This document shows positions 12,825 to 47,369 of a stretch of DNA of 64,000 bases, one piece after another. Source of the stretch: Mobula hypostoma (taxonomy: Eukaryota). Under the pieces are notes generated by a model that saw only the letters and a program-made list of their open reading frames with translations, ran no database searches and was not told the origin of the DNA. A program made the position numbers and the translations under genes. Numbering within the stretch: position 1 is the first letter of the stretch; each line of letters begins with the position of its first letter. Location of the stretch: assembly GCF_963921235.1 (NCBI RefSeq), contig NC_086109.1:2728001-2792000 (forward strand), in the 5' to 3' direction.

Positions 12825-14240
12825 CTGAGGGTGTGAGGGAGAGATGAAAGATGAATAAAGGAGAACCTTGTGGACACCTCGATCCCCAACTCCCCATCCC
12901 ATCCCCAACACTCCAGAGTGAATTTCAAGCCAATCCCACCTCATTTTCACCCAACGGTTTAACCCTTCCCTCACCAGTCACTTGCTGCTGGAGGATGTTC
13001 CCACGTGCACTACCCACATTAATCTACAAACTCTCCTCTATGTCCTCTTTATAGCGCTCTATTCCAGGAATTCTCTCCATTTCCATGTTGTTAGTTCTTC
13101 CTCTGTGCGGTCCCAGCACACAGGGAGAGAGGGTTTCTCAGACAAACATTGCTGAGTGAGATTATTGTGAATGTGATATTACTGTTTGAGTGAGTCAGGA
13201 ACCATATTGCTGTGTGTGAGTGTACTGTTGTGTCCGTGTCCTGTGTCACTCACTGGGACACTATATTCAGTGTAATGAATACACAGGGTCTCACTCAGCA
13301 CAGCACAGCATGAAGGCTGAGGAATAAACACCTTGCTGAGCTCAGACCTCAGTCTGGGCAATTAACCAACAGTGATACCCTCACTGTGTGTGTGCAGGGG
13401 TCAGGAGGTCAACTGAACGGACTCACAGTGACGACCACTCAGCCGGAATTGTCACTGGATCTGGGTCCCCCAAGCTCTCCTAAAGAGCTGGTTCAGCGCA
13501 ACTTGAGCCATCTCTGGGAAATGTCCCACAGGCTGCACCTCCCGTCCCCAGGGGGGTTCCTTCCACCGGCTGCTCCTGTACACTCTGCACTGTCCGACCC
13601 TCACCTGTTGCCTGGATCTCCAATGTCAGGTGGTGAGGGTGGAATCCCAGTTAGAGTCTGTCTGTGAGGACTCTGCCACTCCTCATAAGACCTTGGAGCA
13701 AAGAGGGTGAACAGTCCAATGCTACAGTTTCTGTTGTCTGAGAGGGTCAGAATTCCCTGTTTAGATGGATAGAGGTGTCTAGTGAGCTGCTGTCAGCAGC
13801 CTGTGCCCCACCAGGGGTGATTGGCTTCAGAAGGGTGTAAGAGAATCTAGCTGGATGTGGTAGTGGAGATGGTGTCTAGCCCGACCTACCGGACCAGGCT
13901 TCCTGTTCAATAGTTCACGTCTATACATTGTCGTCAATATCCTTTTGTCTATGTTCTCCCTGTTCCAACTGCTCCAAATCAGCCATTGACCAGATAATCT
14001 TGTAGCCAGCTTATCCCCACGGCACCCTGTCAGAGACACCTCCACATCCGCTTTCCCTATAGTTTTTACTTCTCCACAGTTCTAATGAAGAGTCTTTGAC
14101 CTGAAAAGTTGGCTGTTTTCTCATTCCACAAATGTGTCCTGAACTGCTGACTGCTTCCCTCTCCTGTATCATACGATGGAGACGGAGAGATTTAAAAAAA
14201 TGGATCAGAGTGTGTTTGGGGCTGCTTCTCTGGTTCTCAC

Positions 14241-14290
14241 CCATTTCCCAGCCACGTGCGGCTGTACAGTGAAGAAAGTGCTAAATACTC
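14241..14290 (-). other. Candidate start-codon exon ending ATG G|gtgaga; 5' boundary unknown
   Basis: ATG at 14244-14242 followed by a phase-1 consensus donor. Joined to the acceptor at 46164 of gene B it gives MGLIPLPITDLTYGLSCLVSSAG, a plausible signal peptide. No transcript evidence. Confidence 0.3.
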
Positions 14291-14679
14291 CTGCTCGTGG
14301 GACCACACGGATCTTTAGTACTCGGCCAGGTACGCCGTCTGGACCAGACACGTTAATGTAGGATGAGTGTAAACAGGTGGTCGATGGTTAGCATAGACTC
14401 GGTGGGTTGAAGGTACGAGTTCCCTGCAGTATCTCTCTCTGTCTCACTGCGGATGGCTTCTCCACACTGAGATGCTGGTCACTGAATCCACTGCAGGGCT
14501 GTGCCTGGATCACACTCAATAGTCACTTTATTCAATACAACCCGACGCCTGCCCGTTAACAAATACCAAATCAGCCATCATGTGGCAGCAACTCAGTGCT
14601 GATCTGCTGGGATTTTCACACACATCAAACTCTAGATACGACAGATAATGGTGATTGAAACTAAAAAAATCCATTGAGC

Positions 14680-14906
14680 TGCATTTCTTTGTGCAGACGT
14701 GCCTTGTTTATAAGAGAGGCTGGAGGGGAATAGCCAGAGTGGTTCAAGCTGACAGGAAGGTGACAGAAACTCAAATAACCACACGTTACAACAGTGCTGT
14801 GGAGAAGAAAATCTCTGATGCACAACACCTTGAACCTTGAAGTGGATGGGCGACAGCAGCAGAAGACCATGAACATACCCTTAGTGGCCACTTTATAAGA
14901 TACAGG
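14680..14906. mobile_element. Tc1/mariner-like remnant (duplicate ~46550-46780)
   Basis: Terminal-like motif catacccttagtggccactttataagatacagg preceded by gatgggcgacagcagcagaagacc. Confidence 0.55.
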
Positions 14907-15480
14907 ATGCTATCAATAAATGGCCGCAGAGTGTAAAATCTCCCCAGACACTAAGCAACCGGGGTTACATTCGCAAACATGATCACAAACGTCTTAATCT
15001 TTGTATTATTACCCAACCCACAAACACATCCTAACGCGGTTAATAGGATCAGGGAGGAATGACTCGGAGCCTGGTGTGGCTTTCAGTTCCTGTGACACTG
15101 ACATTAGTACTGGAGAAGGAGAGCACAGTTCCACTGGGACAGACTGTGATCAGAATTCCACTGAATCCAATCACGAGGGAGGTAGACTGAGTTTAAATTC
15201 CATAAAGCTGTGTTGGGAGGAGGACCCCAATGCTGGGAAATCTGGAAGGTTGAAGAGGAGCAACAAGGAAGGGGACAGGGGTCTCGATAACCAGGAGGAG
15301 TACAAACTGAATTTGTCTAAATCTAAACAAACTACTGAAGATCATATGTGTGAGTTCACTCTGCAGGAAAGTGATCATGATGCTTTTGTCATGGTGTCAG
15401 AACAACATAGACCTCAACATAATCAAGACAGAAGATCTAGTTGTTGACCCAAGGAGGAGTGTGTGTGTATACAACCCTGT

Positions 15481-18296
15481 CCTGAGAGCTTGGATACATA
15501 CATGGAATTATGATGTAGTGGCCATTACAGAGACTTGGCTGGCACCAGGGCAGGAATGGATTCTCAATATTCTTGGATTTCAGTGCTTTAAAAGGGATAG
15601 AGGGCGGAACAAGGGGAGGAGGGGTGGCATTACTGGTCAGGGATACTATTACAGCTACAGAAAGGGTGGGTAATGTAGCAGGATCCTCTTTTGAATCAAT
15701 ATGGGTGGAAGTCAGGAACAGGAAGGGAGCAGTTACTTTATTGGGGGTATTCTATAGGCCCCCTGGTAGCAGCAGAGATACAGAGGAGCAGATTGGGAGG
15801 CAGATTTTGGAAAGGTGCAAAAATAACAGGGTTGTTATCAAGGGTGACTTTAACTTCCCTAATATTGATTGGCACCTGATTAGTTCCAAGGGTTTAGATG
15901 GGGCAGAGTTTGATACGTGTGTCCAGGACGGATTCCTGTCACAGTATGCGGACAGGCCGACCAGGGGGAATGCCATACTAGATCTAGTACTAGGTAATGA
16001 ACCGGGTCAGGTCACAGATCTCTCAGTGGGTGAGCATCTGGGGGACAGTGACCACCGCTTCCTGGCCTTTAGCATTATCATGGAAAAGGATAGAATCAGA
16101 GAGGACAGGAAAATTTTTAATTAGGGAAGGGCAAATTATGAGGCTATGAGGCTATAAGGCTAGAACTTGCAGGTGTGAATTGAGATGATGTTTTTGCAGG
16201 GAATTTTACTATGGACATGTGGTCGATGTTTAGAGATCTCTTGCGGGATGTTAGGGATAAATTTGTCCCGGTGAGGAAGATAAAGAATGGTAGGGTGAAG
16301 GAACCATGGGTGACAAGTGAGGTGGAAAATCTAGTCAGGTGGAAGAAGGCAGCATACATGAGGTTTAGGAAGCAAGGATCAGATGGGTCTATTGAGGAAT
16401 ATAGGGAAGCAAGAAAGGAGCTTAAGAAGGGGCTGAGAAGAGCAAGAAGGGGGCATGAGAAGGCCTTGGCGAGTAGGGTAAAGGAAAACCCCAAGGCATT
16501 CTTCAATTATGTGAAGAAAAAAAGGATGACAGGAGTGAAGGTAGGACCGATTAGAGATAAAGGTGGGAAGATGTGCCTGGATGCTGTGGAAGTGAGCGAG
16601 GTCCTCAATGAATACTTCTCTTCGGTATTCACCAATGAGAGGGAACTTGATGATGGTGAGGACAATATGAGTGAGGTTGATGTTCTGGAGCATGTTGATA
16701 TTAAGGGAGAGGAGGTGTTGGAGTTGTTAAAATACATTAGGACAGATAAGTCCCCGGGGCCTGACAGGATATTCCCCAGGCTGCTCTATGAGGCGAGAGA
16801 AGAGATTGCTGAGCCTCTGGCTAGGATCTTTATGTCCTCGTTGTCCACGGGAAAGGTACCGGAGGATTGGAGGGAGGCGAATGTTGTCCGCTTATTCAAA
16901 AAAGGTAGTAGGGATAGTCCGGGTAAAAGTAGACCAGTGAGCCTTACGTCAGTGGTGGGAAAGCTGTTTGAAAAGATTCTTAGAGATAGGATCCATAGAC
17001 ATTTAGAGAATCATGGTCTGATCAGGGACAGTCAGCATGGCTTTGTGAAGGGCAGATCATGTCTAACAAGCCTGATAGAGTTCTTTGAGGAGGTGACCAG
17101 GCATATAGATGTGGGTAGTGCAGTGGATGTGATCTATATGGATTTTAGTAAGGCATTTGACAAGGTTCCACACGGTAGGCTTATTCAGAAAGTTAGAAGG
17201 CATGGGATCCAGGGAAGTTTGGTCAGGTGGATTCAGAATTGGCTTGTCTGCAGAAGGCAGAAGGTGGTGGTGGTGGGAGTATATTCGGATTGGAGGATTG
17301 TGACTCATGATGTCCCACAAGGATCTGTTCTGGGACTTCTACTTTTCGTGATTTTTATTAACGACTTGGATGTGGGGGTAGAAGGGTTGGTTGGCAAGTT
17401 TGCAGACGACACAAAGGTTGGTGGTGTTGTAGATAGTGTAGAGGATGGTCAAAGATTACAGAGAGATATTGACAGGATGCAGAAGTGGGCTGAGAAGTGG
17501 CAGATGGAGTTCAACCCGGAGAAGTGTGAGGTGGTACACTTTGGAATGACAAACTCCAAGGCAGAGTACAAAGTAAATGGCAGGATACTTGGTAGTGTGG
17601 AGGAGCAGAGGGATCTGGTGGTACATGTCCACAGATACCTGAAAGTTGCCTCACAGGTGGATAGTGTGGTTAAGAAAGCTTATGGGGTGTTAGCTTTCAT
17701 AAGCCGAGGGATAGAGTTTAAGAATTGCAATGTAATGATGCAGCTCTATAAAACTCTGGTAAGGCCACACTTGGAGTATTGTGTCCAGTTCTGGTCACCT
17801 CACTATAGGAAGGATATGGAAGAATTGGAAAGGGTACAGAGGAGATTTACCAGGATGCTGCCTGGTTTAGAAAGTATGCATTATGATCAGAGATTAAGGG
17901 AGCTAGGGCTTTACTCTTTGGAGAGAAGGAGGATGAGAGGAGATGTGATAGAGGTGTAAAAGATAATAAGAGGAATAGATAGAGTGGATAGCCAGCGCCT
18001 CTTCCCCAGGGCACCACTGCTCAATACAAGAGGACATGGCTTTAAGGTAAGGGGTGGGAAGTTCAAGGGGGATATTAGAGGAAGGTTTTTCACTCAGAGA
18101 GTGGTTGGTGCTTGGAATGCACTGCCTGAGTCAGTGGTGGAGGCAGATACACTAGTGAAGTTTAAGAGACTACTAGACAGGTATTTGGAGGAATTTAGGG
18201 TGGGGGCTTATATGGGTGGCAGGTTTTGAGGGTCAGCACAACATTGTGGGCCGAAGGGCCTGTACTATGCTGTACTATTCTATGTTCTATGTTCTA
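15481..18296 (+). mobile_element. 5'-truncated CR1 LINE with ORF2 endonuclease and RT
   Basis: EN motifs GDFNFP and LDLVL...DH (15573-16124); RT QHGF, DFSKAFDKVPH, PQGSVLG, FADDTK (16211-17959); (CTATGTT)n tail. Empty site cctgatcaaaacagc at ~47359; no TSD. Confidence 0.95.
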
Positions 18297-19324
18297 AAAC
18301 AGCTACTGTGGAGATGGTTGATAGATTTGAAGCAGACATCTTTATCAACAGCATAGTCTCCTGGTCTCCCCAATTCACACAGTGACCAAGAAAGGACGTC
18401 TACCCAAATTGAATAAAAGTGATCAATACAAAGAGAGATTAACAATCCCCGTGATCCCAAATGAGACACCTGCAACACAAAGTGAAAACCCACTTTGTTC
18501 AAAGACAAACAATTAGACACGAAAAGTTCACAATCGAAGGAACACTACATACCCATGAGGTGACACTGAGAAAATACAATCCACATACAAACTGATAAAA
18601 TCCCTTTCTTCTTTAAAAACAACCCATAGTTCTGACACATACGTCTTACTCAAGTTTCCCATTGTGTGATATGTGTTCTTTCTCTCACTCTCTCACACAC
18701 AGTCAGACACAGAAACACACACAAACAGACAATTGCGCATGCTTACACACATGTGCACACTCACACACGCACAGACGCACACACAAATGTGCACACGTGC
18801 ACACACACAGACACAGATGCTCAGACACACTCACATGCAAACACTCACACTCTCTGCTCTGTTGTTACATTGTGTGATCCGGGTTCACAAACACTTTGCT
18901 GAGCTCGTGTCAACATGACGAGCAGGAGCAGGAAGCGGACGTGCTACCATTGAACCAGACAACATGTTCAAATGATCTGGCTGAAACATTTTCTTGTCAT
19001 TTTCCTTGATCTCCTTAATATCCAGAAATATATCAATGAAAGAAGAATTTCTGGATCACCGGAGAATCCCAATGATTTACCACAGTCTGCCAGCTGGCTT
19101 CGTAATGGCCTGGTATGGGAACACCATGTACTTGAACAGAAAATCCTACAAAATGTAATGAATTCAGTCCAGTACATCATGGATAAAACCTTCCCAGCCA
19201 CTGAAAGCATCTACATGAAACATTGCCATAATCAAAGATCCTCATCACCCAGGCCATGCTCTTTTCTCACTGCTGTCATCAGGTAGAAGGTACAAGAGCC
19301 TCAGGACCTACACCACCAGGTTCA

Positions 19325-20233
19325 TAGTCATAGTCACACTTTATTGATCCCAGTGGAAATTGGATTTTTGTTACAGTTGCTCCATAAATAATAAATAGCA
19401 ATAAAATCATAAATAGTTTTTTAAAAAACCATAAATAGTTCAATATTAATATGTAAATTATGCCAGGAAATAAGTCCAGGACCAGCCTATTGGCTCAGGG
19501 TGTCTGACCCTCCAAGGGAGGAGTTGTAAAGTTTGATGGCCACAGGCAGGAATGACTTCCTATGACGCTCTGTGTTGCATCTCGGTGGAATGAGTCTCTG
19601 GCTGAATGTAATCCTGTGCCCACCCAGTACATTATGTAGTGGATGGGAGACATTGTCCAAGATGGCATGCAACTTGGTCTGCATCCTCTTTTCAGACACC
19701 ACCGTCAGAGAGTCCAGTTCCATCCCCACAACATCACTGGCCTTACGAATGAGTTTGTTGATTCTGTTGGTGTCTGCTACCCTCAGCCTGCTGCCCCAGC
19801 ACACAACAGCAAACATGATCACACTGGCACCACAGACTCGTAGAACATCCTCAGCATCGTCCGGCAGATGTTAAAGGACCTCAGTCTCCTCAGGAAATAG
19901 AGACGGCTCTCACCCTTCTTGCAGACAGCCTCAGTGTTCTTTGACCAGTCCAGTTTATTGTCAATTCGTATCCCCAGGTATTTGTAATCCTCCACCATGT
20001 CCACACTGACCCCCTGGATGGAAACAGGGGTCACCGGTACCTTAGCTCTCCTCAGGTCCACCACCAGCTCCTTAGTCTTTTTCACATTAAGCTGCAGATG
20101 ATTCTGCTCAGACCATGTGACAAAGTTTCCTACTGTAGCCCTGTACTCAGCCTCATCTCCCTTGCTGATGCATCCAACAATGGCAAAGTCATCAGAAAAC
20201 TTCTGAAGATGACAAGACTCTGTGCAGTAGTTG
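19325..20233 (-). mobile_element. 5'-truncated Rex1/Babar-type LINE
   Basis: KTKELVVDLRR...YKYLG...SRLYFLRRLRSFN (19819-20085) and (CTATGA)n tail; empty site aggttcaagaacagg at ~48321. Confidence 0.85.
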
Positions 20234-22093
20234 AACAGGTTATTTATTGATATTTATTTATATTTGCATTTTCACAATTTGTTGTCTATTGATCCTGTTT
20301 ACAGTTACTGTTCTATAGATTTGCTCAGTATGCCCGCAGAGAAAGAATCTCAGGGTTGTATGTGATGACATATATGTACTCTGATAATAAAACTTATTTT
20401 CAACTTCTTGAATAGAGACCTAGTCTATTACCCACACTAGCGACATGTCAGACCCACCACATCAGAAACCAGTCTGGTGAATCTTTGTGACAATTCCCCT
20501 TAAACAGCATTCATTTCTCACCCATTATCACAGATTCCAACATTGTCCCCGCTCCCAGTGTCAGCTGGGGAGATGTGTGGTTCCCAGTTTTCTCTCTCTC
20601 CCTCCTTCTTGAAACAGTCTGTCGGAACCATTCCTGAAACTGTAGAGTTTGCCAGGTGATAACCAGAAAGTTGAGTAACTCTACTGACACCTTGCCACAG
20701 ACTCCGGGATGGAGATCATCAGGCCTGTGTCAATTATCCATTTTCATGATGTTATTTCATCATGGATGCTGATTGATTTTATTTCTACACTTGCATTCAA
20801 CACCTGTCTATCCTGTATTTCTGGCAGGTTTTTGTGTGTTCCACAAAGACACACAAAAAGCCATGGTTACTTCCTCTACTGTTCCTTCATTCCCCATTAC
20901 AAAGACCCATGTCTGTCTGTAAGGGAACTACAGTTGTACCTGCTGCTGTGTTTGTTTCATGTCCTGATTCCGGCTCTCACAATCTGTTCTTAATATCCTT
21001 CAACTTCCATTTTCACTTTCTTCAACGATATATCTGTGACCCTTTGCTGTGTTCGTAATCAATCTCAATCCTCAGGTTTATGACTAATTCTGCAGGTTAA
21101 CACCCATTTCAGGCAATGATATCAGGATTTTATTTATTATTCTCTCTCACAGTTTGTATGCCCATTATTGTGATTTGGGCTATTGACAGATCGACAGTCT
21201 GTCTGCCGAGAGAGAGTGAAAACCAGCACTTGGGACCAAAAACGAAGATGACTGTTAACAATTTCCACTCTCATTCTCCATTCCAGTGTCCCCCACACCC
21301 GCCACTTCTTGCCCCCACCATCCACCATTCCTACAGCGATTCCCCATCAGGATCTTTTCCCATGAAACATCTCCAGACCAGATCCCAGTTCCTGGGTTCT
21401 GAGGGGTCCTAGGTCACATCTACTGATTTCCACATCTCTGCCAATCCTTCCCAATCCTGTGAACAACTGATACCTGTTTCTCAAGCTCCGTTTCCAGAAT
21501 TAGAAACAGAATGGTTCCATGGCTACAGAAAAAACTAATCTTCGGACCCAATACCCACCAGTAACCGAATTTTTCTTGCTCTCCATGTCAAACTCGTATT
21601 TTATGAGAGTGTGACAGGAGAGGCAGCTTCACTGTGCCCATCCTACACTCTCGGTGCCCTGGTAGTGAGGGACCCAGAAATGCCCAAGTCCACATCAACA
21701 GAGAACCTGGAGAGAAGGATGTTAAAGACAAAGACTTGCTCTGAATCAAACTTACAGAGTGAGGCGCAGAGAGTTAGCCAGCAGGAGATCAGCAGATGCC
21801 TGGTGTTCATTGTTCTCACAGAACAGTGTAGACGTTGGTGGGCTGCACAAAGCTTCATCCCCTAGTCAGTACGTTGTGAACAGCAGTCGACAAGAAAGTA
21901 GGTGTTGTGCAAAAGGTGAAATACAGAGGTGTGATCACAAGCAGAAAGCCACAGCGCTCGACGTCATGAGCGGACTGACTGATGTCAGTATTTCACCTCA
22001 CACCAAATAAGAACAATAAAATCAGGAGGATTTTTGACCCCTTGTTCCTGCTCCACAATCAATGAGACTATGACTGATCTTTTATCACATCAC

Positions 22094-25000
22094 AGACAAG
22101 ATCACACAAGGCGGAGCAGAAATAGGCCATTCGGCCCATCGAGTCTGCTCCGCAGCTCCCCATGAGCTAAACTATTCACCCATCTAGTTCCAATTTCCGG
22201 CTTTTTCCCCATATCCCTTGATACCCTGACTAATTAGATACCTGTCAATCTCCTCCTTAAACAGCCTCAATGATCGGGCCTCCACAGCTGTATGTGGCAA
22301 CAAATTCCACAAATCCACGACCCTCTGGCTAAAAAAATTTCTCCTCAAATCTGTTTTATCTGGGTCTCTAATTCTAAGACTATGGCCTCTTGTCCTGGAC
22401 TCACCCACAAAGGGAAATAACCTTTCCACATCTACTCAGTCCAACCCTTTCAACATTCGAAATGTTTCTATGAGATCCCCTCTCATTCTTCTATACTCTA
22501 ATGAATACAATCCAAGAGCCAACAAACGCTCCTCATATGTTAGCTCCTGCATTCCAGGAATCATCCTCGTAAATCTTCTCTGAACTCTCTCCAACATCAG
22601 TATATCCTTTCTAAGATAGGGGGCCCAAAACTGCACACAGTATTCCAAATGAGGTCTCATTGATGCCCCATAGAGCCTCATCAACACCTCCTTACTCTTA
22701 TACACTATTCTTGAAATGAACGCCAACATAGCATTCGCTTTCCTTACCGCTGAACCAACTTGGTGGTTAACCTTTAGGGTATTCTGCATGAGGATCCCCA
22801 AGTCCCTTCCCACTTCTGATTTTTGAATTTTCTCCCCATCTAAATAATAATCTGCCCAATTATTTCTTCTTCTGGAATGTACAACTGTACATTTGTCAAC
22901 GTTGTATCTCATCTGCCATTTCTTTACCCACTCTCCTAAACTGACTAAGTCTCTCTGCAACCTTTCCGTATCTTCAACATTTCCTGCTCCTCCACCTATC
23001 TTGGTGTTGTCCGCAAATTTAGCCACAGAACCATTTAATCCATAATCCAAATCATCGATATACATCGTAAAAAGAAGCGGCCCCAACAACGACCCCTGCG
23101 GAACACCACTAGTAACCGGCAACCAATCAGAATAAGATCCCTTTATTCCCACCCTTTGCTTTCTGCCTATCAGCCAATGCTGCACCCATTTCAATATCTT
23201 TCCTATAATTCCGTGGGCTCTCATCTTATTAAGCAGCCTCATATGCGGCACCTTATCGAAGGCCTTTTGAAAATCCAAATACACAACATCCACAGCCTCT
23301 CCCTTGTCAATCTTATTCGAAATTACCTCAAAAAATTCCAATAGGTTGGTGAGACAGGATCTTCCCTTCATGAAACCATGCTGGCTTCGGCCTATCTTAT
23401 CATGCACCTCGAGGTATTTCATAAACTCGTCCTTGAGGATTGACTCCAATATCTTTCCAACTACCGATGTCAGACTAATAGGTCTGTAATTTTCTTTTTG
23501 CTGCCTCGTTCCTTTCTTAAATAATGGAACTACATTTGCAACCTTCCAGTCCTCCGGAACCATGCCAGAGTCTATTGATTCCTGGAAGATCATTTCCAAT
23601 GCTTCCACAATCTCCAAAGCCACCTCCTTCAGAACCCTTGGGTGCACCTCATCCGGGCCGGGAGACTTATCTATTCTTAGTCCACTTAGCTTCCCAAGCA
23701 CTTTCTCTCTAGTAATCTTGACTGTACCTAATTCTATTCCCTGATACCTCTGGCTATCAGGTATATTGCTCATGTCTTCCACTGTGAAGACTGATGCAAA
23801 ATACTCATTCAGTTCCTCCGCCATCTCTTTGTTATACATTATAATTTCTCCAGCATCATTTTCAGTCGGTCCCTTATCTACCCTTGTCACTCTTTTACTC
23901 TTCATATATTTAAAAAAACTCCTAGTATCCTTTTTTATGTTAATCGCCAACTTCCTTTCATCTTTTCTTTCCTAATGACTTTCTTAATTTCCTTCTGTAA
24001 GTTTTTAAAGGTCTTCCAGTCCTCATTTTCCCCACTAATTTTTGCTTCCTTGTACGCTGTTTCTTTTGCTTTTATTTTTGCCTTAACCTCTCTCGTTAGC
24101 CACATTTGTGCCATTTTTCCATTCATGATTTTCTTTTTTCTTGGAATATATTTTTCCTGCATTTTCCTTATTTCTTGTAGGAATTTCATCCAATTCTGCT
24201 CTACAGTCCCTCCATTTAGCATACTTTTCCAATCAACGTGGGCCAGTTCCTCTCTCATACCACTGTAATTTCCCCTGTTCCACTGAAATATCGACACACC
24301 TGATACCAGCTTCTCCTTTTCAAATTTGAAACTGAACTCAATCATATTATGATCACTACTTCCAAGGGGTTCCTTTACCTCCAGCTCCCTAATCGCCTTA
24401 GGTTCATTACACAGCACCCAATCCAAAACAGCCGGTCTCCTGGTGGGCTTCTGGACAAGTTGCTCCAAAAAGCCATCCTGTAGGCATTCTACAAACTCCC
24501 TCTCCTGAGATCCATTACCTTCCCAACTTTCCCAATCCACTTTCATATTAAAATCCCCCATAATTATCTTGACATTGTCCTTCTGACACACTTTTTCTAT
24601 TTCCATCTGCAACTTGTAGTCCACAACCCGGCTGCTGTTTGGAGGCCTGTATATAACTGCTATTAGTGTCTTTTTACCCTTGCCATTTCTTAATTCTACC
24701 CATAAGGATTCTACCTCTTCTGATCCTATGTCCCTTCTTTCTATTAATTTGATATCGTTACTTACCATCAGTCCACGCCACCCCCTTTACCTACCTTCCT
24801 ATCTTTCCTATACACTGTGTATCCTTGGATATTCAGCTCCCAATCACATCCATCATTTAGCCATGACTCGGTGATGGCCACAATGTCATATCTTTTAACC
24901 TGCAGCTGTGCAGCAAGGTCATCCACTTTATTTCTAATGCTGCGTGCATTTAAGTACAGTACATTTAGATTAGTATCTGTTGTCGATTTTGCTATATTTC

Positions 25001-25495
25001 TATTTTGCAGCAAATTATCCTGTATATTCACCGGCCTGTCCTTCTTGCGATCTTTGCTGCACAGTATTTTTGACTTATTTCTATTTTCCTCTTCCTCGAC
25101 CCTAACACCTTGGTTTCCTTCCCCTTGCCAACTTAGTTTAAACCCTCCCTAATAGCTATTTTAAAAAATCCCGCCAGGATATTAGTACCTTTTGGGTTCA
25201 GGTGTAATCCATCTTTTGTGTACAAGTCACACCTTCCCCAAAAAAGATCCCAATGATTCAAGAATTTGAAACCCTGCCCCCTGTGCCAGTCACCTAGCCA
25301 CACATTCATCTGCTTAATTCTGCTATTCTTACCATCATTAGCGCGCAGCTCAGGCTGCAATCCTGATATTATTACTCTGGAGGTCTGGCTTTTCAATTTT
25401 CTTCCTAGCTCCCAGTAATCTTTCTTTAGGACCTCCTCTCTTTTTCTGTCTATGTCATTGGTACCAATATGTACCAAGACTTCCGGCTGCTCGCC
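22094..25495 (-). mobile_element. CR1 LINE (second family), truncated in ORF1, with frameshifted ORF2
   Basis: ORF1 esterase VHIGTND...HLNPKG (25133-25500); EN LNARS, GDFN, SDH (23935-25031); RT 22436-23950; putative 8-bp TSD cacatcac/cacattac (22086-22093, 25496-25503). Confidence 0.9.
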
Positions 25496-27399
25496 CACAT
25501 TACCACAGTCCTGACCAAAAGAACAGAAAAGCCAACATAAAGTGGTGGATATGGCCCAGTCCATCACAAGAAAAACCCTCCCCACCACTGAGCAGATCTA
25601 CAAGGAGCACTGCGACAAGAAAGCAACGTGCATTATCAAGGACCCCGACCATCCAGTCCATAATCTCCTTTCATTGCTGCTGTCAGAAAGGAGGTACGGA
25701 CCTCAGGTTCCACACCACCAGGTTCAGGAACAGTTACACATCAGACTCCTGAACCAGTGTGGATAACTTCACAGACCGCAACTCTGAATTGATTCCACAA
25801 CCTATGGACTCACTTTCAATGATTTCATGTTGTAGAGCATATGAGGAGCATTTGATGGCTCTGGGCCTGTACTCACTGAAATTTGGAAGATTGAGTGGAA
25901 ATTTCATTGAAACCTATCGAATGTTGAAAGACCTCGTCAGAGGACATAAGAGGACACTTCTTATGGTGGAGGGGTGTAGGACCAGAGGACACAGCCTCCA
26001 AATAGAGGAACGTCCATTTACCCTGATCCAACACCATCTCCATTTTTTTCTCCATTTGCCTCTTCCTCTGCCCACCTGACCAAACAATCTCATCTCCCGG
26101 AAATCTGAAGCTTTCATACAACAAAGCAAGGGATTGAAAGCACATCCTGTGGATTGTCAGTCATGAAGGAATTTAAAAACTGTAGAACACTGAATGAGCC
26201 AGGGAAAGGGTGAACGGTAAAAACAAATATATACTTTGTAGTGGAAGGAATGGAGGCTGCCAGTTTATGTGTGTTCGCTGTGGCCACCATTTTGTGAGCT
26301 GGCTCCCCCCGGGACGGTTTGATCAGAGCAGCAAAAAGTAGATACAGTGGGGTCGACAATCTGATAAATAAGAAATCATTTTCAAATAAAAAGCTGTTTT
26401 TGATTTCGTCGGACTGACAGGCTTATCAAAGAAACAGCCTGTGTGACCTGAGGAAGACTGAGCTGCGTATTTGATTGAACTAGGTTGAACAAAGGAAGTG
26501 ACATGGGGCAAGAACAGTAAATTAATACAGTTTGTGGCCTTGTGCGCGGGTAGAATGTGGGGGAGGTGATGGGATTAATGAAATGGTATTGCTGTAAAGT
26601 GGTGTTTGATGATCGGTGTTCACTCATGAATCAAAGGGCCGGTTTCGGTGCTGTTTGACCCCATGGACGGCAGAGGAAGTCAGAGAACGGACAAGGCAGC
26701 TGAGAGAGCAGCAGAGACGCTGAAGGAGACAAGGAGCTTCATGGATGGGAATTCCCAGTGAGAGAGCTCCAGAATGTCTGCGGAGAAGAAAGAAACAGCG
26801 GGAGGGATGGAGTTGTCAGTGCTTTCTGATTCAGGGTGTGGACAAGCAGAGAACCCAGAAGTGACTACAATGATGAAGGGTCTGCACACCCACTCAACAA
26901 GTCTCAAACATATGTTCCAGCTCTCTACTCAGAGTCCCCCATTACAACTGGTCTTGCCCACCAAACAGACATGAGAGAGCGCAGAGGAGGGAGGGATCCC
27001 ACCACGTACAGACTCTACATCTGCTTCTGGAACAATGGCAGCGTGCTCAGACACAGCGGCCACTCCGGTGTATTTGTTCATCCTGTACGTCTATTTTACA
27101 TCCACAAGTCACTGCCAGAGACTCAGAACATCAGTTACTGCAGGACTACCCCATCAGCGACTTGCTTGATATTGATGGAGCTTGACTTGTCACGTACATT
27201 TGTGCCCAGACTGTGCGCGGTCCTAAAAAGGTACGGTCGATTGCCTTGGACATTTAGTATAGTGATCACAAGACCCTGTTGAACAACAATATACTGCAAG
27301 TTTAGTTTACTCATTCTTTGGAGAGACCAATGACGGGGGAATTGCATTGACTCAGTTGTTACGTGAACAAATTGTGCTGCTGGATCTCCAGATGACCAT

Positions 27400-29199: not shown

Positions 29200-29480
29200 T
29201 ATAGAACATAGAATAGTACAGCACAGTACAGGCCCTTGACATTTTGCTCTGCTGTGTGATGAACTGAGGCTGAGGCTGCGGCCTGCTCCGGATGCTCTCT
29301 GGGCTCACTTTCATTCTGAATGCTTTGGCTGCCTTTTATTGTTTGCAGGATTGGTGTGTTGTCTCTCTCTCTCTCTCTGCACATTGGGTGTTCGTTGTCG
29401 TTCTGTTTCATGGGTTCTTTTGAGATTCTTGTTTAGTGACTGTCCATAAGGAGATGAATCTCAAGCTTGTATAATATATG

Positions 29481-37775: not shown

Positions 37776-38244
37776 GGCCTTATTCATTTATTTATGAACT
37801 GCAGTAGAAGTTGGGGTAAATAGATCAATGATTTACAGGGGACATGTTCCCACAAAATCTGTTCTGCTGCAGAAGGCTAGTGACAGCTGTTAAACTAATA
37901 TTCAATACCTACAAAGCACAGCAGGAAAGAGGGGCCAAGCTTTTGTCCCGTAGACCTCACCCCAACGGTGGGACTCAGAGGACCCCAGTATCACCCACCC
38001 ACCAGTCCATATTCAATCCCCCCTGAGAGTCTGTGCCATTCAGCAAGAAGAAGGATCATCGTAGACTGTCCAGGGGCTCTGTCCTCAGCCCATCCACGAT
38101 GGCGTCTGGCACGGTACATTACTGCTTCACAGTCAGTGGGGTGAGTCTGCAAACTACAACAGAAACACAAGTTGTCAGTCCACAATGGGTGAGTTAAGGG
38201 AAACAGAGACAGGACACACTGTGTCAGGGAGTCAGAGATTGGGA

Positions 38245-38560
38245 CACCCAGAGACAGGACCCAGGAAAAGGGAGATACAAACCAGGACGCAGACAGGAAG
38301 ATACAGACCAGGACACAGGGACAGGGTAATACAGACCAGGACACAGACAGGGAGATACAGACCAGGACCCAGGGACAGGGTAACACAGACCAGGACACAG
38401 ACAGGGTAATACAGACCAGGATCCAGGGACAGGAAATACAGACCAGGACCCAGGGACAGGAAGTACAGACCAGGACACAGAGACAGGGAAATACAGACCA
38501 AAACATCAAGACAATGAGATACAGACCAGGGCCCAGTTAGGGAGCTACAGACCAGGACGA
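38245..38560 (+). repeat. ~20-bp minisatellite (atacagaccaggac.cagggacagg); a second short array at ~38865-39060
   Basis: Direct tandem units with variable length and no unique spacers. Confidence 0.85.
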
Positions 38561-39271
38561 AGTTAGGATATGGAAGCAGGGAGATACAGAGACAAGGACT
38601 CTGGAGAGGGGAGACATTGAGACTGGGCACATCGACACGTGACACATGGACACAAAAGACCTGGACATGCAAAGCGACACACAATGATGGAAACTCAGAT
38701 CACCCCATCAGCACCAATCAACTGACAAACAATGATACTAACCTAGCATCAGCATGGCCTCATTCTCAGTGCATTCTGAATGAATTCACACACTGTCCAT
38801 CGACACGAGTATTAAATCCATGACTGATCATCAGAAATGCACATACTACTGGGCATAACTGCATGTATAGGGACAGGGTAACCCAGTGACTGGGAGTGTG
38901 GGGACAGGGTACCCCAGTGACTGGGTGTGGGGGGGAGAATGTACCTCAATGACTCGGTGTGTTGGGGACCGTGTATCGCAGCGACAGTGTGTGGGGTTGG
39001 TGTCAGTGTAGCCCAGTGACTGGGAGTGTGGGGACAGTGCGCTCAGTAACTGTGTGTGTGTACGCGGAGTGGACAATTACTGTTAGATCTGCCAGACCAG
39101 GCCTGGAGATCACTGAGGCAAAGTTTCAATTGACTCCTCAGTGGTATGTGGGTTCTTGCTGTGCCCCCGTCTGTGCGCTGCTGAGTTCCACAGTGGTGGT
39201 TGGAACGATCTCCGGTGACGGGGACCTGTGGTTGATTCTGGGATTGTGCAGATTACATGTAGGCCTTATGT

Positions 39272-39429
39272 TCAGTCTGCCCTGAGGAGGGTGAGTGACC
39301 CAGAGTGGCCTCTTTCCAGGGGTAATGTGTCTGTCATTACCCTGTCATTCCCCTTGGGGGGCTGCCAGACACTACGATTCTTCTGCATCCTCTGAAGATT
39401 TGTGTAAATGATGTCCGTCTCCACTTGGT
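39272..39429 (-). CDS. Gene B cytoplasmic exon (D)QVETDIIYTNLQRMQKNRSVWQPPKGNDR..., with ITIM-like IIYTNL; 3' end uncertain
   Basis: Acceptor tttctgtcccacAG at 39431-39430, phase 1. It either reads to TGA at 39272 or uses the donor AGG|GTAATG at 39340. Confidence 0.7.
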
Positions 39430-39592
39430 CTGTGGGACAGAAAGGAGAGGTGACAGGGTCTGTACTAAAACTATTCCCCACTTTACCCCATCTAACCCCT
39501 CTCTCCCATCCCTATTGTCACCTCCCTGCCCACCCCCTCTCTCTCCCTCCCCCAAATACCAGACTCAACGACAGGGTGTCAGATCCACTCGC

Positions 39593-39742
39593 CTTCAGTC
39601 CCTGAAGTTACTTCCCTTCCCTCAGGTCTTCTCCTCCGTGTGACTGTGAGGACCACAGTGAGAGCAAAGATCAGGAGGGTCCCCACCACTGAGAGTACGA
39701 TCATCAGCATCACTGAGTCTAACGCTGCTGTTGTTTTAGGGA
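39593..39742 (-). CDS. Gene B transmembrane exon PKTTAALDSVMLMIVLSVVGTLLIFALTVVLTVTRRRRPEGREVTSGTE
   Basis: Acceptor ctgtgttacAG; 150 nt; phase 1-1; donor AG|GCGAGT. Confidence 0.88.
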
Positions 39743-40842
39743 CTGTAACACAGAGGAGAAAAGATTTCCTGATGAATCCAGTCCTCACGCTCCCAGTGAC
39801 ACAGGATTGACGAATTCACCCCATCCCTCCTCAGTTGGAGAAAACTCCCTGTCACCTCAACACGGTCCCTCAGTACCCTACAATCACTATCACATAACTC
39901 CCCTCCAAACCCCACCTCTCCACCCTGCTCCTCTCCCTTCCAACATCCCTCAGTCCCTCCACCCCATTCCCTCCAATCTCCATCATATCATGGTCCTGCA
40001 CTGCTCCCCTCCAATACCCCTCAGTCCTCTCTCCATCCCCATTCCCTCCAATCACTATCAAATCACTCCTCTCCCTTCTCCTCCCCTCCAATACCGCTCA
40101 GTCCCCTCATCCCCTAGTCACTATCACATCACTGCCCTCCACCACCCTTCTACACTGTGGTGCCCCCACTGGTACACAGAAGAAGAATACAGTTGACAGA
40201 CATATTTAGAAACATTTGTGACAGGAATTAAGGAAATGGTAGAGGAATCAAAACTGAAGTTCCCATCTTCTCAAACAAAGGTACAAAAAATCTCCCAGAA
40301 ATACAAAGACCCTGTGGCCTTAAACAGCGAGGAAAGAAAAGATGTTCTCTAAAACTCATCCAATCCCTCAGTCACCCCTCACACATCCTCAGTTCCCTGT
40401 AACACAGACTCTCTCCACTGCTGTTAATCATTTCCCTCATCCATTCCCTCGATAACCCCTCTTTCTCAGTGCCTGTACCATCGAATGCAAATCCACTCAT
40501 GTTCATCCAGTTCTTTCTCACTGACTTCAGGATTGAAGGACGTTCTTTTAGAACTGAGTTGCGGAGAAATTTAGTCAGAGGGTGGTAAATCTGTGGAATG
40601 TGTTGCCACGAGCGGCTGTGAAGGCCAAGGGTGTATTTAAGGCAGAGATAGGGAGGTTCTTGATTAGCCAGGGCACCAAAGGGTGTGCGGTGAAAGCAGG
40701 GGAGTGGGGATGACTGGAAGAATTGGATCAGCCCATGATTGAATGGTGGAGCAGGATGGATGGGCTGAATGGCCTACTTCTGCTCCTATATCTTATGGTC
40801 TTATGGTCTTATGATTGTTTTGTGTCTGATATTACCCTCGCT

Positions 40843-41262
40843 TGTCACAACCACAGATTCGGCAGCACAGTAGATATGGCAATCGCACTTGTGAATTTGC
40901 ACGTGTTGGGTAATTATTATTTAATCGTGATAGTATTTAACTACATTCTTGTCGTCGTAGTGCTTGTCGAGACTTGGACAGAGCATAGCAAAGCTTCACT
41001 GCCATTTTGCATTCGGCCGTCCCTGAGCCATTGGACTTTCAAAACCAACTGACTCTGAAGACTAACGGTATTCGTTTAATGTTTAGATATTCTTTTCGGC
41101 CGCAGTGTAGGCTTCATTTCCCTTTTGAGAGTTTTAGTTAACGACCCTGCTTGGCCTAGCATTTATTGTTTTATTTTCCCTTTTTTGAATTAAAGTCTGA
41201 ACTATCGACCTGTTTCAGTGTCTCTCACTCCGCACTTGGGCCATATCGGAACCGTGGTGACA
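40843..41262. mobile_element. Solo LTR-like element, duplicate of 10014-10433
   Basis: Same termini, offset 30829, nearly identical. Confidence 0.65.
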
Positions 41263-42253
41263 CTGCTTCCTGACACTGTCACCAGGAACCCCTCTTCCCC
41301 ATCACCGTGTATCACTGAATGTATCCACTGATACTGACTGAGTTCTTCACGTATTCCCTTCATCCCTCCTCTCCACAAACTTTCGGAGTCGTTAAATGTA
41401 TGTCCAGTGATGTCATTCAATCTCCCTTACCTAGTTCCTCAGAAACCCCTCTTCCTCAGTCTCCAGTGCCACAGACTGTTTCTCCACTGATGTTAATCCT
41501 GTTCCCTCACACTATCCCTCTGCAGCCCCTCTCCCCTCGTGTCTTTGTCCCTGTCTGTATCTCTGATGATGTTGATCCAGCTCCCTGACACTGTCCATTA
41601 CTGCTCAGTGAGATTTGCCCCGTTCCCCGCAGAACTGAGGCTGAGTCAGTGTCCATATCCGGCTGCTCCGGGCTTCGTGTCTTTGGACTCACTGGTTAAT
41701 CTAACTCTCACATTCTCCCTCTGAAATCACTCACAGCAAGGGACCTGCATCATAGACCAGATCTCCACAAATATTAGTCCAATTCTGTCAAAAAGAAAAC
41801 TCTGTGTAAACCCTCTTCCCCAGCACATGTGTCACGGATTGTATTTCCACTGATTTTAATCCAGCTCCCTCACACTGGCCCTCAGTAACCCCTCTCCTCA
41901 AACTCAGCCTCCACCTCCCTGACCACTCGATGCCTCAGCTATCCAAAATAATCCTTCCCTCCAATCGAATCACTCCCTCCCTCCAGCAACAGTGCACAGT
42001 TGATTCAGTGTGGACCTTCTGCAAAATGTACTGTAGTTCCTCACCCAGGCTGTGCTGACAAATATGAGCAGAGGCCTGAGTATAAAATACAAAAAATGAA
42101 GGTTGCCGATAAAGTAAATGGTTCTCTACGGTATCCTCTCAAACAGTGTCAGAGTGCAGAATAGATACAAACTGAAGCTCCTCTGTGCTGTCCCATCTCA
42201 CACTCCTGGGACGGGGAGATAACTAAATCCCAACTTCTTCCTCTGACACTCAC

Positions 42254-42538
42254 GACGTGTGTCCAGATTACAGACGTCGCCCAGTCGGACCTGTGCGGTG
42301 TCCTCACTGATGGGGTTGCTGGCTTCACACCTGTACACAACATCCTCCATCTCTGCTGTGCAATCAACCTGTATCGTCTTTCCGTCTTTCCAGAAGTGCT
42401 GGCTGCTGTTGTCTCCTGTAACTTCTCCTCTCCACCAACTGAATCTGGTATGGTTGCCAGAGGTCACGGAGCAGGTCAGGGTGAGGTTACAAGTCCCAGT
42501 GATGTTCTGAACCATGATGTTTGCTCCTGACACGGGCT
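42254..42538 (-). CDS. Gene B Ig C2-set exon, CD2/SLAM type
   Basis: AG and GTGAGT sites; 285 nt; phase 1-1; CNLTLTC...W...YRCEASNPIS...VC. Confidence 0.9.
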
Positions 42539-43116
42539 CTGAGGGTGTGAGGGAGAGATAGAAGATGAATAAAGGAGATCCTTGTGGACACCTCAATCCC
42601 CAACTCCCCCATCCCATCCCCAACACTCCAGAGTGAACTTCAAGCCAATCCCACCTCAATTTTACCCAACGGTTTAAACCTTCCCTCACCATTCACTTGC
42701 TGCCAGGGGATGTTCCCACGTGCACTACCCACACTCATCTACAAACTCTCCTCCATTTCCTGTTTATAGCTCTCTATTCCAGGAATTCTCTCCATTTCCA
42801 TGTCTTTAGTTCTTCCTCTGTGTGGTGCCAGCTTCCCTTTGAAATCTGACTGAGCCCCAGCCTTGACCTGCCCTGAACCTGGTCCAACCTAAGACACAGC
42901 CCAGTCTATTCTGTCAGTCTCTCCATCTCCACACTGCCTGCCCAGATTATGATGAAGGTTTGAGTCTATGTCATTTCTTTCATCTCTGTTCTCATACCCT
43001 CTCCAACCAAAAGTAACAGTAAGGTTCATCTGTCCGTCTCCTTCTACCCCACTCGTCTCCCTATTCAGTGCATCAACATCTATGCTTCCTGGTCCTTTCA
43101 ATGAGACTCCATTGAA

Positions 43117-44700
43117 TCATAGAGCATTGCAGTGCCAAAACAAACCCTTCAGTCCATCTAGTCCATTCCTAGTCCCATTGATACTCATCTGGACATCACC
43201 TTCCACATCCCTTTCAATATTTATCCCAATTTCTGTTAGACATTGAAATCGAACCTGGTTCCAACCCTTCCACCTGCACCTTGTTCCACCCTCTGAGTGA
43301 AGAAGTTTCCCCACCTTCCCCTATAACTCAGGTCCTTGAGTCCTGATACTCTGCACTCTTTCAACCTAATTGATACCTTTCCTGTACGTAGGTGACCAGA
43401 ATTGCACAAATACTGCAAATTAGGCCTCTCCAAGGTCTTATACAATTTCAACATAACATCCCAACTCCTGGACTCAATTCTTTGATTTATGAAGGCCAAT
43501 GTGCTAAAAGCTTTTTTTATGACCCTATCTACCTGTGATACCACTTTTAAGAAATTATGGATCTGTATTCCCAGATATCTCTATTCTACTACACTCCTGA
43601 GTGCCCAACCACTCATCATTTATGTCCCACCCTGGTTTACTTTCCAAGGGTCAAGGCTTCGTACTCGTCTGCATTAAATTCAACCTGCAAATTTTCGGCT
43701 CATTATTCCCGCTGGTCCCGATCCTGCTACAGGCTTTGATAGTCTTCTTCACTGTCCACTATACCCACAACTACTGTCATCCGCAAATTTGATGATCCAC
43801 TGACATTCCACTCCCTTCCCTCTTTCTTACATATTTTGACCAGTTTCTCCCTGAGTAACACCTCGCTCTGCTCTTCTGCCAAACCCACAACTCCCACCAC
43901 TCCACGACCCACTCCACTTTCTGGACATCCATGGGAGGGGGGCTTCATATGAACTTTCACATTTTCCCTTCCCTCCATGCAGGGAACCAAAAGCTGAAAC
44001 AGTGATTGACGAGCACTCCCAATGCAGTGAACTGCACTCAGTGTTCACACGGTGGCCTCCTCTCCACTGAGAAGCCAGGCACAGTGTCACTAACCACCTT
44101 GAGGGACATCTCAGTTCAGGCACAATTGTAACTCAGAAGTTCTAGTTGCTGTCACTTTGATTCTCCATCCTGCTCCCACTCTGACACACTGATTCTGACT
44201 TCTGACACTATTCCAGTGAGACCAATGTATAGACAAGAGCCCATCTCCAGCTGGATGAGATGCAGAACTTGTGGCTCTCCCTCCTTTATAGAGATGATAT
44301 TCAGAACAGGTTCATTGTCTGAAAGGTTTTGTTGACTACAGTCTGATTCAGAGAGTCATAGAGTCCCAGAATACTATAGAACAGGAACAGGCCCTTCAGC
44401 CCATCTAGTCCATGCCGATTTCTTAACTTGCCTTGTCACATCAACCTGCACCCAAAACGTAGCCCCCCATAACCATTCCATTCATGTATCTATCCAAATT
44501 TCTTTTAAATTTTGAAATCCAACTCACATCCATCACTTCTGCTGGCAGTTCATACAACATGCTCAGCACGTGTCATGAAGGATGTCCTCTTAAACATTTT
44601 GCCTTTCACCCCAAACCCATGACCTCTAATTCTACTCTGACCCAATCTCAGTGGAAAAATCCTGCTTGCATTTACATGATCTGTATCCCTCATAATTTTG
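43117..44700. mobile_element. Decayed CR1 and Penelope fragments in the V-C2 intron of gene B
   Basis: KKAFSTLAFINQRIESRSWDVMLKLYKTL (minus, 43236-43544), GIY-YIG-like remnant ~44020-44160, CR1 tail ~44370-44700. Confidence 0.65.
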
Positions 44701-45783
44701 TAAACCTCAGTCCCTTTCTTCCCATACACGATCCCAGAGGAGGTCTTTGTCTCCAACCCATGTTCATGATTTTTTATCTTCTGTTTTCTATTTCCCATGT
44801 TCTGACGTTCTCCTCCTTCAAATGGTGAACATTAACACTGGAATAGAGGATGTTGTAATGTGAAGTCACCGGAGAGACACCAAAGCTGCTGGATATAGAA
44901 ATGTCTGATTCACCAAAAACAGGCATCATATTGAGACAATCTTGGAAGAAACGGCCTCCTGATTCAATATTACATAATACTGTGACATGCTAAAGGTCAA
45001 AGGTAAATGCAGGATAATTGTACAGTTACAATGTACCAACAATGCTTCTTTGGCTTACATATATTTTTCACATATCTTGTCATTCACACCCACACTCCAG
45101 ACACACAAAATGAATGTTAATCAGAATTGTCTGGTTTGCAATCAACTCAGTCTGCAGCTACAGGAAAACTACTGTTCAGAGCTGCACTTTAAATTCAATC
45201 TACAATCCACCTTCATGTCTGAAGATGGGTTGTGGTGAGATTAATATTTGTTTATTACTTAACTGCACAATGTGCCCTAACAGAGGAGTAATTCAGTGTA
45301 ATGAACACACAGGGTCTCACTCAGCACAGCACAGCATGAAGGCTGAGGAATAAACACCTTGCTGAGCTCAGACCTCAGTCTGGACAATTAACAAGCAGTG
45401 TCCTGGGAAACAGACTGGATAACTGGGATCCCTGAGCATGACAGACTAGGCCTTTGACTGGAGATACAGTGTGTAACTGCGACCCACAGATACAGACTGT
45501 TCAGGCCATTCACACCAGGTCCATTCTCCCTGTGTGCTGAGCTCCCTCCGTCTCAGATACATGAGATTCCCCAATGTTAGTTCGATCCCTTCTGGCTCCT
45601 GTCTCAGTCTCGGTGGATGTGACGGGTGTGTCCTCCAAACTCACACTGTCTCAGCCTCACTACACTGGGACCGTGAGCCCAGCTCTGGACACAGGTAGTC
45701 AGTGAGGTTCAGTGAACAGGGAAACACACAGGATCTGCCCTTACCCATCCATTAGGGGTGTTTCAGGGACCGGTCTCACTCAC

Positions 45784-46104
45784 CGTACACCTGCAGTCGC
45801 ACTGTTGTTTTATATTCATTTCCTGAACTTGCAGCTGCAAACATCACCTCATAATCACCAGAGTCCTCTCTCCGTAGATTATGGATTTCCAGACTGGCAT
45901 TCCCAGGATGAAAGGTTATCCTGTTCTTGTACTGCTCATTACTGAAGTAGCTGATGTTCCCATTCAAGTACTTCACAATCATATTTCTGGGTGATACCCG
46001 AATCCAATAAACCTCATTGTCCGGACTGACTGGTCTCCCAAAAGGTAAGGAGACTGAGTGTCCCTGAGCTCCGGTCACCGTGGTAGGGGGAGCCCCAGTC
46101 CCAG
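45784..46104 (-). CDS. Gene B Ig V-set exon without the B-F disulfide (CD2/SLAM N-terminal domain); in-frame alternative acceptor at 46164
   Basis: GHSVSLP...VYWIR...YKNRITFHPGNASLEIHNLRREDSGDYEV...VRLQVY; no Cys; acceptor cttgtctcctcAG, donor G|GTGAG; 321 nt; phase 1-1; joins C2 as VY-EP. Confidence 0.92.
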
Positions 46105-47369
46105 CTGAGGAGACAAGACAAGACAGTCCGTAGGTGAGGTCAGTGATAGGAAGAGGAATCAGACCTGGGAAAATCAAAGACACAGGAGGAAGCCAAGCGG
46201 CCCATCATGTTGTTCCCAGCCCTGTGAGACAGACAGCACAAAGTTAGTGTTGTTTCATGCCGATACCCTTCATCGGGACTCCAGACTCTCTGTACCCGGC
46301 CCTCAGAAATGAAGTTGCAGCCTGCAGACGGATATCAATGGTCAGGAGGGGGGGGAGGGGGGTCACAGATATTTTCTAGGAAGTTTGGGGTGAGATACTG
46401 GGATACCCTCACTGTGAGTGTGCAGGGGTCAGGAGGTCGACTGATCGGACTCACAGTGACCACCACTCAGCCGGAATTGTCCCTGGATCTGGGTCCCCCA
46501 GGATCTGGCTCTCCTTCAGAGCTGGTTCAGCAAAACTAAAAAAATCCATTGAGCTGCATTTCTTTGTGCAGACGTGCCTTGTTTATAAGAGAGGCTGGAG
46601 GGGAATAGCCAGAGTGGTTCAAGCTGACAGCAGGGTGACAGTAACTCAAATAACCACACGTTACAACAGTGCTGTGGAGAAGAACATCTCTGATGCACAA
46701 CACCTTGAACCTTGAAGTGGATGGGCGACAGCAGCAGAAGACCATGAACATACCCTCAGTGGCCACTTTATTAGGTGCAGGATGATATCAATAAATGGCT
46801 GCAGAATGTAAAATCTCCCCAGACACTGAGCAACCGGGGTTACATTCGCAAACATGACCACAAACGTCTTGATCTTTGTATTATTACCCAACCCACAAAC
46901 AGATCCTAACGCGGTTAATAGGATCAAGGAGGAGTGACTCAGAGTCTGGTGTGGCTTTCAGTTCCTGTGACACTGGCATTAGTACTGGAGAAGGAGAGCA
47001 CTGTTCCACTGGGACAGACTGTGATCAGAATTCCACTGAATCCAATCACGAGGGAGGTAGACTGAGTTTAAGTTCAATAAAACTGTGTTGGGAGGAGGAC
47101 CCCAATGCTGGGAAATCTGGAAGGTTGAAGAGGAGCAACAAGGAAGGGGAGAGGGGTCTCGATAACCAGGAGGAGTACAAACTGAATTTGTCTAAATCTA
47201 AACAAACTACTGAAGATCATATGTGTGAGTTCACTCTGCAGGAAAGTGATCATGATGCTTTTGTCATGGTGTCAGAACAACATAGACCTCAACATAATCA
47301 AGACAGAAGAACTAGTTGTTGACCCAAGGAAGTGTGTGTGTGTACACACAACCCTGTCCTGATCAAAAC

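Follow-up and report, generated by a model that had tools for sequence, protein, structure and literature searches.

Receptors of the SLAM/CD2 type (SLAMF1-9, CD48 and CD2) are built from a leader, a cysteine-free V domain, a multi-cysteine C2 domain, a single transmembrane (TM) helix and a tail with a tyrosine motif; each domain has its own phase 1 exon, and the genes lie in a large paralogue cluster on one chromosome. The immunoreceptor tyrosine-based switch motif (ITSM) is present in SLAMF1 and SLAMF3-7 and absent from SLAMF2/CD48, SLAMF8, SLAMF9 and CD2. In expanded clusters of immune receptors such as KIR, LILR, Ly49 and NITR, tandem duplication with a breakpoint inside a gene gives rise to partial-duplicate pseudogenes; in such partial duplicates, small deletions subsequently remove exons and transposons accumulate, and some of their exons stay open. 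A literature search returned nothing specific on elasmobranch SLAM genes. Here, we analysed 64,000 nt of the genome of the ray Mobula hypostoma (RefSeq contig NC_086109.1, positions 2,728,001 to 2,792,000; henceforth the window), in which two paralogous genes of this type, A and B, lie in tandem on the minus strand. A preliminary description of this DNA held that reciprocal deletions of ~1 kb left each gene lacking what the other retained, and that neither might be complete alone. We find instead that the locus very probably consists of an intact, annotated gene B and a V-less pseudogene, gene A, that arose by tandem duplication and have since acquired independent insertions and deletions (indels).

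By its predicted exons, gene B is complete alone and is already annotated as 'SLAM family member 8-like'. Exon 1 (49840-49894, minus strand, as are all exons of genes A and B) holds the start codon and the signal-peptide leader, MNTRHLLISCWLTLCASL plus 1 nt, ends in a perfect phase 1 donor, CTCT|GTAAGT, and was placed by tblastn with homologue N termini, by the splice model and by the RefSeq protein P0153. It lies 3.7 kb upstream of exon 2 (45784-46104), which encodes a cysteine-free V-set domain (Pfam V-set, E 5e-13) between the acceptor ...ctcctcag|CT at 46105/46104 and the donor TACG|GTGAGT, in phase 1-1. Exon 3 (42254-42538) encodes a C2-type immunoglobulin (Ig) domain, as indicated by Ig_3/ig Pfam matches, homologues and the splice model. 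Exon 4 (39593-39742), placed by homologues and the splice model, encodes the stalk, the TM helix and RRRRPEG and ends in the GC donor GAAG|GCGAGT. Finally, exon 5 (39272-39429; splice model) is cytoplasmic and carries the motif IIYTNL, which resembles an immunoreceptor tyrosine-based inhibitory motif (ITIM). This exon has two options: it either ends at the stop at 39272 or is spliced after GNDR into a last exon near 38050-38153. The five exons joined in this order give a 969-nt open frame of 322 codons, interrupted by three GT-AG introns and a single GC-AG one, in which leader, V, C2, TM and tail are all intact.

The N terminus of this frame is well anchored in homologues. The tblastn search located four copies of MNTRHLLISCWLTLCASL in the window, at 49894-49841, 21810-21757 and 2174-2121 on the minus strand and at 57602-57655 on the plus strand. 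Of 18 residues, 17 agree with the N terminus of annotated homologues, and the same leader begins relatives among the proteins of Mobula birostris, Hypanus sabinus and Hemitrygon akajei. Among 377 relatives recovered by a HMMER search with the V exon, the alignment of single-V proteins to the first V-exon residues starts at about residue 20; homologues set the mature N terminus in the V exon of gene B at GTGAPPTTV, which follows a leader of 18-21 residues. Moreover, residues 1-270 of the predicted protein are identical to P0153, 'SLAM family member 8-like [Mobula hypostoma]', the sole difference being that P0153 reads through the GC donor to a stop at 39579 and ends in GEWI. The gene span of P0153 in GCA_963921235.1, 10,316 bp, corresponds to 49894-39579 of the window to the base. 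It is on the conserved leader of its own, the intact frame, and the identity and exact gene span shared with P0153 that the predicted completeness of gene B rests; the suggestion that neither copy may be complete alone thus does not hold for gene B.

Two other candidates for a leader were considered. A scan of 46106-47729 and 13375-15600 for an ATG leading to a phase 1 donor, i.e. a leader adjoining the V exon, gave nothing credible; similarly, ATGATG at 46209, taken as a leader contiguous with the V exon, does not lie in the V frame, which moreover contains a TGA.

A GC-AG intron follows the TM exon in both copies (at 39593, AAG|GCGAGT, in B and at 8535, AAG|GCAAGT, in A). The RefSeq models of several paralogues read past this GC donor and end in GEWI, GKWI or SKWM; therefore, these models may omit the exons with the tyrosine motifs. 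In the region of the candidate last exon of B (38050-38160, minus strand), the paralogue models use three frames, with the tails ...PTEYAAVM..., ...VVCRLTPLTARQ and ...DGLRTEPLDSIL.

Judged by its predicted protein, gene B is a SLAM/CD2-type receptor, in which the cysteine-free V domain, the five-cysteine C2 domain and the tail motif fit the SLAM/CD2 pattern. It shares with this group all of the features listed above, from the leader to the phase 1 exons and the paralogue cluster. The V domain has no cysteine and is therefore without the canonical intradomain disulfide; the C2 domain is followed by a single hydrophobic TM helix and RRRR. The tail differs from that of the ITSM-bearing members: in place of the ITSM, TxYxx[V/I], it carries the ITIM-like IIYTNL, with Ile at position -2, and the second motif, in the candidate last exon (38050-38153), reads PTDCEAV, the tyrosine being replaced by Cys. 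Relatives keep TVYANI (P0010) and TEYAAV at these motifs. The lack of an ITSM in gene B is compatible with the ITSM-less subset and therefore does not exclude SLAM/CD2 membership. The Pfam matches to SLAM (E 0.031) and Receptor_2B4 (E 0.065) both fall under the threshold; ray and shark relatives carry the automatic NCBI names SLAMF5-, SLAMF8-, SLAMF9-, Ly-9- or CD48-like, and several of them match PF06214 or PF11465. The likeness is drawn at the level of the family, short of an established one-to-one orthology to a mammalian SLAMF member.

The relationship of the two copies was defined by BLASTN of A (8000-18000) against B (39000-47729) together with a self-comparison of the window. Both comparisons reveal a collinear duplication on the minus strand, in which A 8324-26549 pairs with B 39383-51223. 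The collinear blocks extend from the V region through the leader exons and past them; therefore, the entire gene including the leader was duplicated. Around the V exon, block A13265-13374 matches B45291-45400 (96.4% identity), block A13374-13497 matches B46402-46531 (90%) and block A14658-15485 matches B46533-47362 (96.3%). Between the first two blocks, gene B has 1001 bp (45401-46401, with a boundary uncertain by 1 nt) that are absent from gene A; this is the V-bearing segment previously given as 1002 extra bp, the segment itself being real and its length 1 bp less. Between the second and the third block, gene A has 1160 bp (13498-14657) that are absent from gene B, which has one additional 'a' at the junction. 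This pairwise alignment bears out the earlier report of ~1160 bp missing from B, and the strings quoted for the junctions, at 13374/13375 in A and at ~46531 in B, read as described.

These two gaps are part of a larger set. Further segments are present only in A, at 10854-11972, 15486-18295 (a long interspersed nuclear element, LINE), 19325-20232 and 22094-25497, and 2458 bp of B (42833-45290) that hold a LINE reverse-transcriptase fragment have as their counterpart in A 147 unrelated bp (13118-13264). In total, the copies differ by at least seven large indels. Because at least five of these come in addition to the two ~1 kb gaps, the apparent reciprocity of the two gaps is incidental, and we conclude that large indels piled up independently in copies A and B. 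The segment present only in A lies within intron 1 and holds no exon of the family. LINE copies with open reading frames for endonuclease and reverse transcriptase lie at 15350-17150 (plus strand) and 29952-31612 (minus strand), one of them within intron 1 of gene A.

As read from the alignment, gene A has lost the V exon, which encodes the ligand-binding domain, by a clean deletion of ~1 kb. The window holds one V exon, two C2 exons and two TM exons; the sole V exon is that of gene B (46104-45784), and it sits within the segment present only in B together with parts of intron 1 (297 bp) and intron 2 (383 bp). That gene A is without its ligand-binding domain, as previously proposed, is thus upheld. 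The putative scar of the deletion in A, at 13374/13375, shows 1 nt of microhomology. The remaining exons of gene A are recognisable. Its leader exon (21756-21810) differs from that of B at 1 of 55 nt, a synonymous change, and has the same GTAAGT donor; the C2 exon (12540-12824) is open and 93.7% identical to that of B at the nucleotide level; and the TM exon (8535-8684) has 86% nucleotide identity to B and an Arg in the helix (VIRLLV). The tail exon (8314-8372) is truncated: it encodes DPLETGIIYTDLQKNRSVL and meets a stop 19 codons in, and homology to B stops at ~8315, the duplication breakpoint. A counterpart of the last exon of B was sought for gene A and not found.

The loss of the V exon has a direct consequence for the reading frame. 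The leader, V, C2 and TM exons all join in phase 1, as the preliminary description had it; at the splice from leader to C2, however, the last T of the leader and the first AG of the C2 exon form T|AG, a stop. The same stop would result in B and in every paralogue of the window whose leader and C2 exons were read, and because B shares the leader end and the C2 start with A, skipping of the V exon in B would also be nonsense. Among 206 fetched family proteins, none matched gene A exactly, and the best match was ~85%. We infer that gene A is a degenerate unprocessed pseudogene: unprocessed because its introns are retained, and a non-coding remnant because without the V exon the leader can splice only to C2, giving TAG. 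It resembles the partial duplicates of KIR, LILR, Ly49 and NITR type, with nothing notable that differs.

Within the TM exon of A, the interval 8600-8660 (minus strand) has dense substitutions relative to B that give the Arg in VIRLLV, and the helix of the annotated paralogues P0154 and P0160, VIRLFV, is alike. This patch suggests gene conversion from, or nearer kinship to, the paralogue type of P0154 and P0160.

Several features would fit a gene A that is still alive and makes a V-less or chimeric product, through splicing of a read-through transcript from B to A or through an unrecognised upstream exon. The leader, C2, TM and tail exons of A are all open and their splice sites are intact; the V exon of B would join the C2 exon of A in frame (G|AG, Glu); the Arg patch is shared with the annotated neighbours; and the ratio of nonsynonymous to synonymous differences (pN/pS) in C2 is 0.44. 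However, the leader-C2 junction is a stop, and from the V donor of B its own C2 acceptor is 3 kb away as opposed to 33 kb for that of A. Moreover, the fetched family proteins include no model of A, its open exons are short, and the duplication is young (3-6% divergence). Altogether, a living gene A appears very unlikely. A special form of this idea, in which A serves as a spare exon cassette and read-through from B occasionally splices the V exon of B to the C2, TM and tail exons of A, is a more distant prospect still; if true, it would provide a second form of the receptor whose membrane helix carries an Arg and whose shortened tail has the ITIM only, i.e. a paired variant spread across two loci.

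That A is a V-less remnant beside a complete B also has to be weighed against the reading that the two genes are complementary halves, in which B lost its start with the 1160 bp, A lost its V exon, and a receptor is restored by cross-paralogue splicing or unequal crossover. Both indels exist. Similarly, donor-like sites at ~13604 and 14240 are present in the segment found only in A, as reported, and include ATGG|GTGAGA, which is in frame with an AG at 46164. This AG is probably usable as an alternative acceptor, for the Mobula birostris model P0159 uses its equivalent, adding CLIPLPITDLTYGLSCLVSS; that model is still joined to the canonical leader, and the regular V acceptor of gene B lies 60 nt (20 codons) downstream of 46164. 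G|GTRAG motifs occur at ~0.6 per kb per strand in the window, and two donors in 1160 bp are therefore near chance. The start proposed from ATG-G and 46164 has the frame ascribed to it, but consists of a start codon plus one base only, and the peptide that would follow has an Asp and three Pro in the supposed hydrophobic core, whereas every homologue begins with the MNTR... leader. Position 14240 lies ~32 kb downstream of the V exon of B on the transcribed (minus) strand; therefore, joining it to this exon would need trans- or back-splicing. Finally, gene B has a conserved leader exon and an intact annotated coding sequence. The preliminary description had itself allowed that a leader exon of B elsewhere would undo the complementarity, and with the exon at 49840-49894 the complementarity is refuted in silico; we regard this reading as exceedingly improbable.

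The 1160-bp segment present only in A (13498-14657) lies inside intron 1 and is made up of unique sequence and a piece of a decayed Tc1-like element, namely its 5' end; the counterpart junction in B (46531-46533) is 427 bp upstream of the V acceptor, and family proteins compared with the segment by tblastn gave no alignment. Debris of the Tc1-like element continues into the flank common to both copies (14658-14935 in A and 46533-46810 in B, plus strand), with a fragment of the transposase helix-turn-helix (HTH) and a small element bounded by terminal inverted repeats (TIRs); the family is high-copy in the genome. A TIR-like sequence at 14512-14532, within the segment present only in A, matches the reverse complement of the family end recovered from loose read ends (score 15 compared with a maximum of 12 in 300 shuffles). 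Moreover, a transposase-like reading frame crosses 14657/14658 into the shared part, where Pfam PF01498 (HTH_Tnp_Tc3) gives a weak match below the cutoff (E 0.051) and no DDE domain is found. Protein searches tying the end present only in A to Tc1 gave no matches, Pfam gave none for a 41-aa piece in that segment, and other Tc1 copies usable for comparison were not found in the window; part of the Tc1-like assignment left of the junction leans on the general form of Tc1 transposase N termini. The element at A 14512-14935 thus resembles Tc1/mariner remnants in its 5' TIR-like sequence, its PF01498 fragment and the very high copy number of its family in the reads, and differs in being heavily decayed and internally deleted, with a Pfam match below threshold.

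Based on these features, the 1160-bp difference probably reflects a deletion in B, which would have cut away the 5' end of an old insertion of Tc1-like type and touched no exon. The opposite polarity, an insertion in A that would leave only one of the two events a deletion, is rather doubtful. It would agree with the several other insertions acquired by A in the same intron, and the window offers no second copy of the segment for comparison. Yet the segment lacks a target-site duplication, a poly-A and terminal repeats of its own; the Tc1-like 5' TIR within it stands in the orientation and order to be expected with respect to the transposase fragment of the common flank; and, since the reading frame crosses the boundary, an insertion would require the chance restoration of register. 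Two very high-copy repeats, at 46472-46789 and 48221-48538, reach a summed depth of hundreds of thousands in DNA contigs from M. hypostoma and a related species; the former consists of Tc1-like debris and includes a small TIR-TIR element (46750-46810).

Sequencing runs were examined as Logan contigs, which were compared with B 45200-49950. A DNA contig of 187 nt from M. hypostoma spans 46298-46485 without mismatch and crosses the right edge of the segment present only in B. One contig of the putative RNA sets, ~91% identical and from a paralogue, ends exactly at the 3' boundary of the V exon, 45784. Over 45200-49950 no joint of leader to V was seen, and the joints listed include no skip of 45401-46401. 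Because the two high-copy repeats named above dominate this output, it neither supports nor contradicts expression.

The missing V exon of A might also be an artefact of assembly, e.g. a collapse of similar copies. The cluster is rich in repeats, and an N gap lies at 47730-47865. However, the flanks of the junction in A (13374/13375) depart from B at a number of sites and, to either side, run collinearly with sequence specific to A, and a collapse would seldom give a clean excision of 1001 bp; an artefact is thus highly improbable.

Several points weigh against the interpretation of an intact B beside a V-less pseudogene with independent indels. The support that P0153 lends to gene B is at the level of a gene model. 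Of the four indel edges, the reads show one, the right edge of the segment present only in B. Two putative RNA contig sets leave the leader of B uncovered, and the RNA contigs on the V exon are only ~91% identical and come from paralogues. Taken alone, the pN/pS of 0.63 between A and B is not enough to show that A has decayed. Finally, the polarity of the 1160-bp indel leans on one weak TIR match, one weak Pfam match (E 0.05) and the general form of Tc1 transposase N termini.

Altogether, we favour the following history. A unit of at least 12 kb on the minus strand would have been duplicated in tandem, comprising a whole SLAM/CD2-type gene from the promoter region and leader through V, C2 and TM to the first tail exon. 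Of the two copies, B (49894 to ~38050) would have remained intact, and A (21810-8314) would have started out with its tail cut short, since the breakpoint of the duplication lies in the first cytoplasmic exon. Copy A would afterwards have lost 1001 bp, precisely the V exon with some flanking intron, by an event that resembles end-joining with 1 nt of microhomology. Without the V exon, the leader of A would join C2 and the split codon would turn into T|AG. The absence of 1160 bp from B would be an unrelated event in intron 1, the likeliest being a deletion in B that took out unique sequence of the intron together with the 5' end of the Tc1-like element.

The neighbourhood holds further members of the family. 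The leader exon of B (49840-49894, minus strand) and that of P0154 (57602-57656, plus strand) lie head-to-head, 7.7 kb apart, and the leader-bearing segments of the two genes are inverted copies of one another. P0154 is named 'SLAM family member 9-like', has its start codon at 57602 and extends beyond the end of the window. A fourth copy of the leader, at 2120-2174 (minus strand), has the same GTAAGT donor and presumably belongs to a further paralogue with V and C2 exons left of the window start.

The importance of these observations lies mainly in annotation. Gene B is complete by its predicted exons and is the SLAM-like gene that the annotation already contains, and 21810-8314 is an apparently unannotated V-less duplicate that is not to be counted when the SLAM/CD2 expansion of this ray is sized. 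For Ig-superfamily genes in general, two cautions follow: a match of phase between exons is no guarantee of a readable exon-skipped product, as the T|AG codon illustrates, and leader exons may sit several kb upstream of the V exon. Altogether, gene A is very probably an ordinary pseudogene that neighbours the annotated gene B within a large SLAM/CD2-like cluster rich in transposons.

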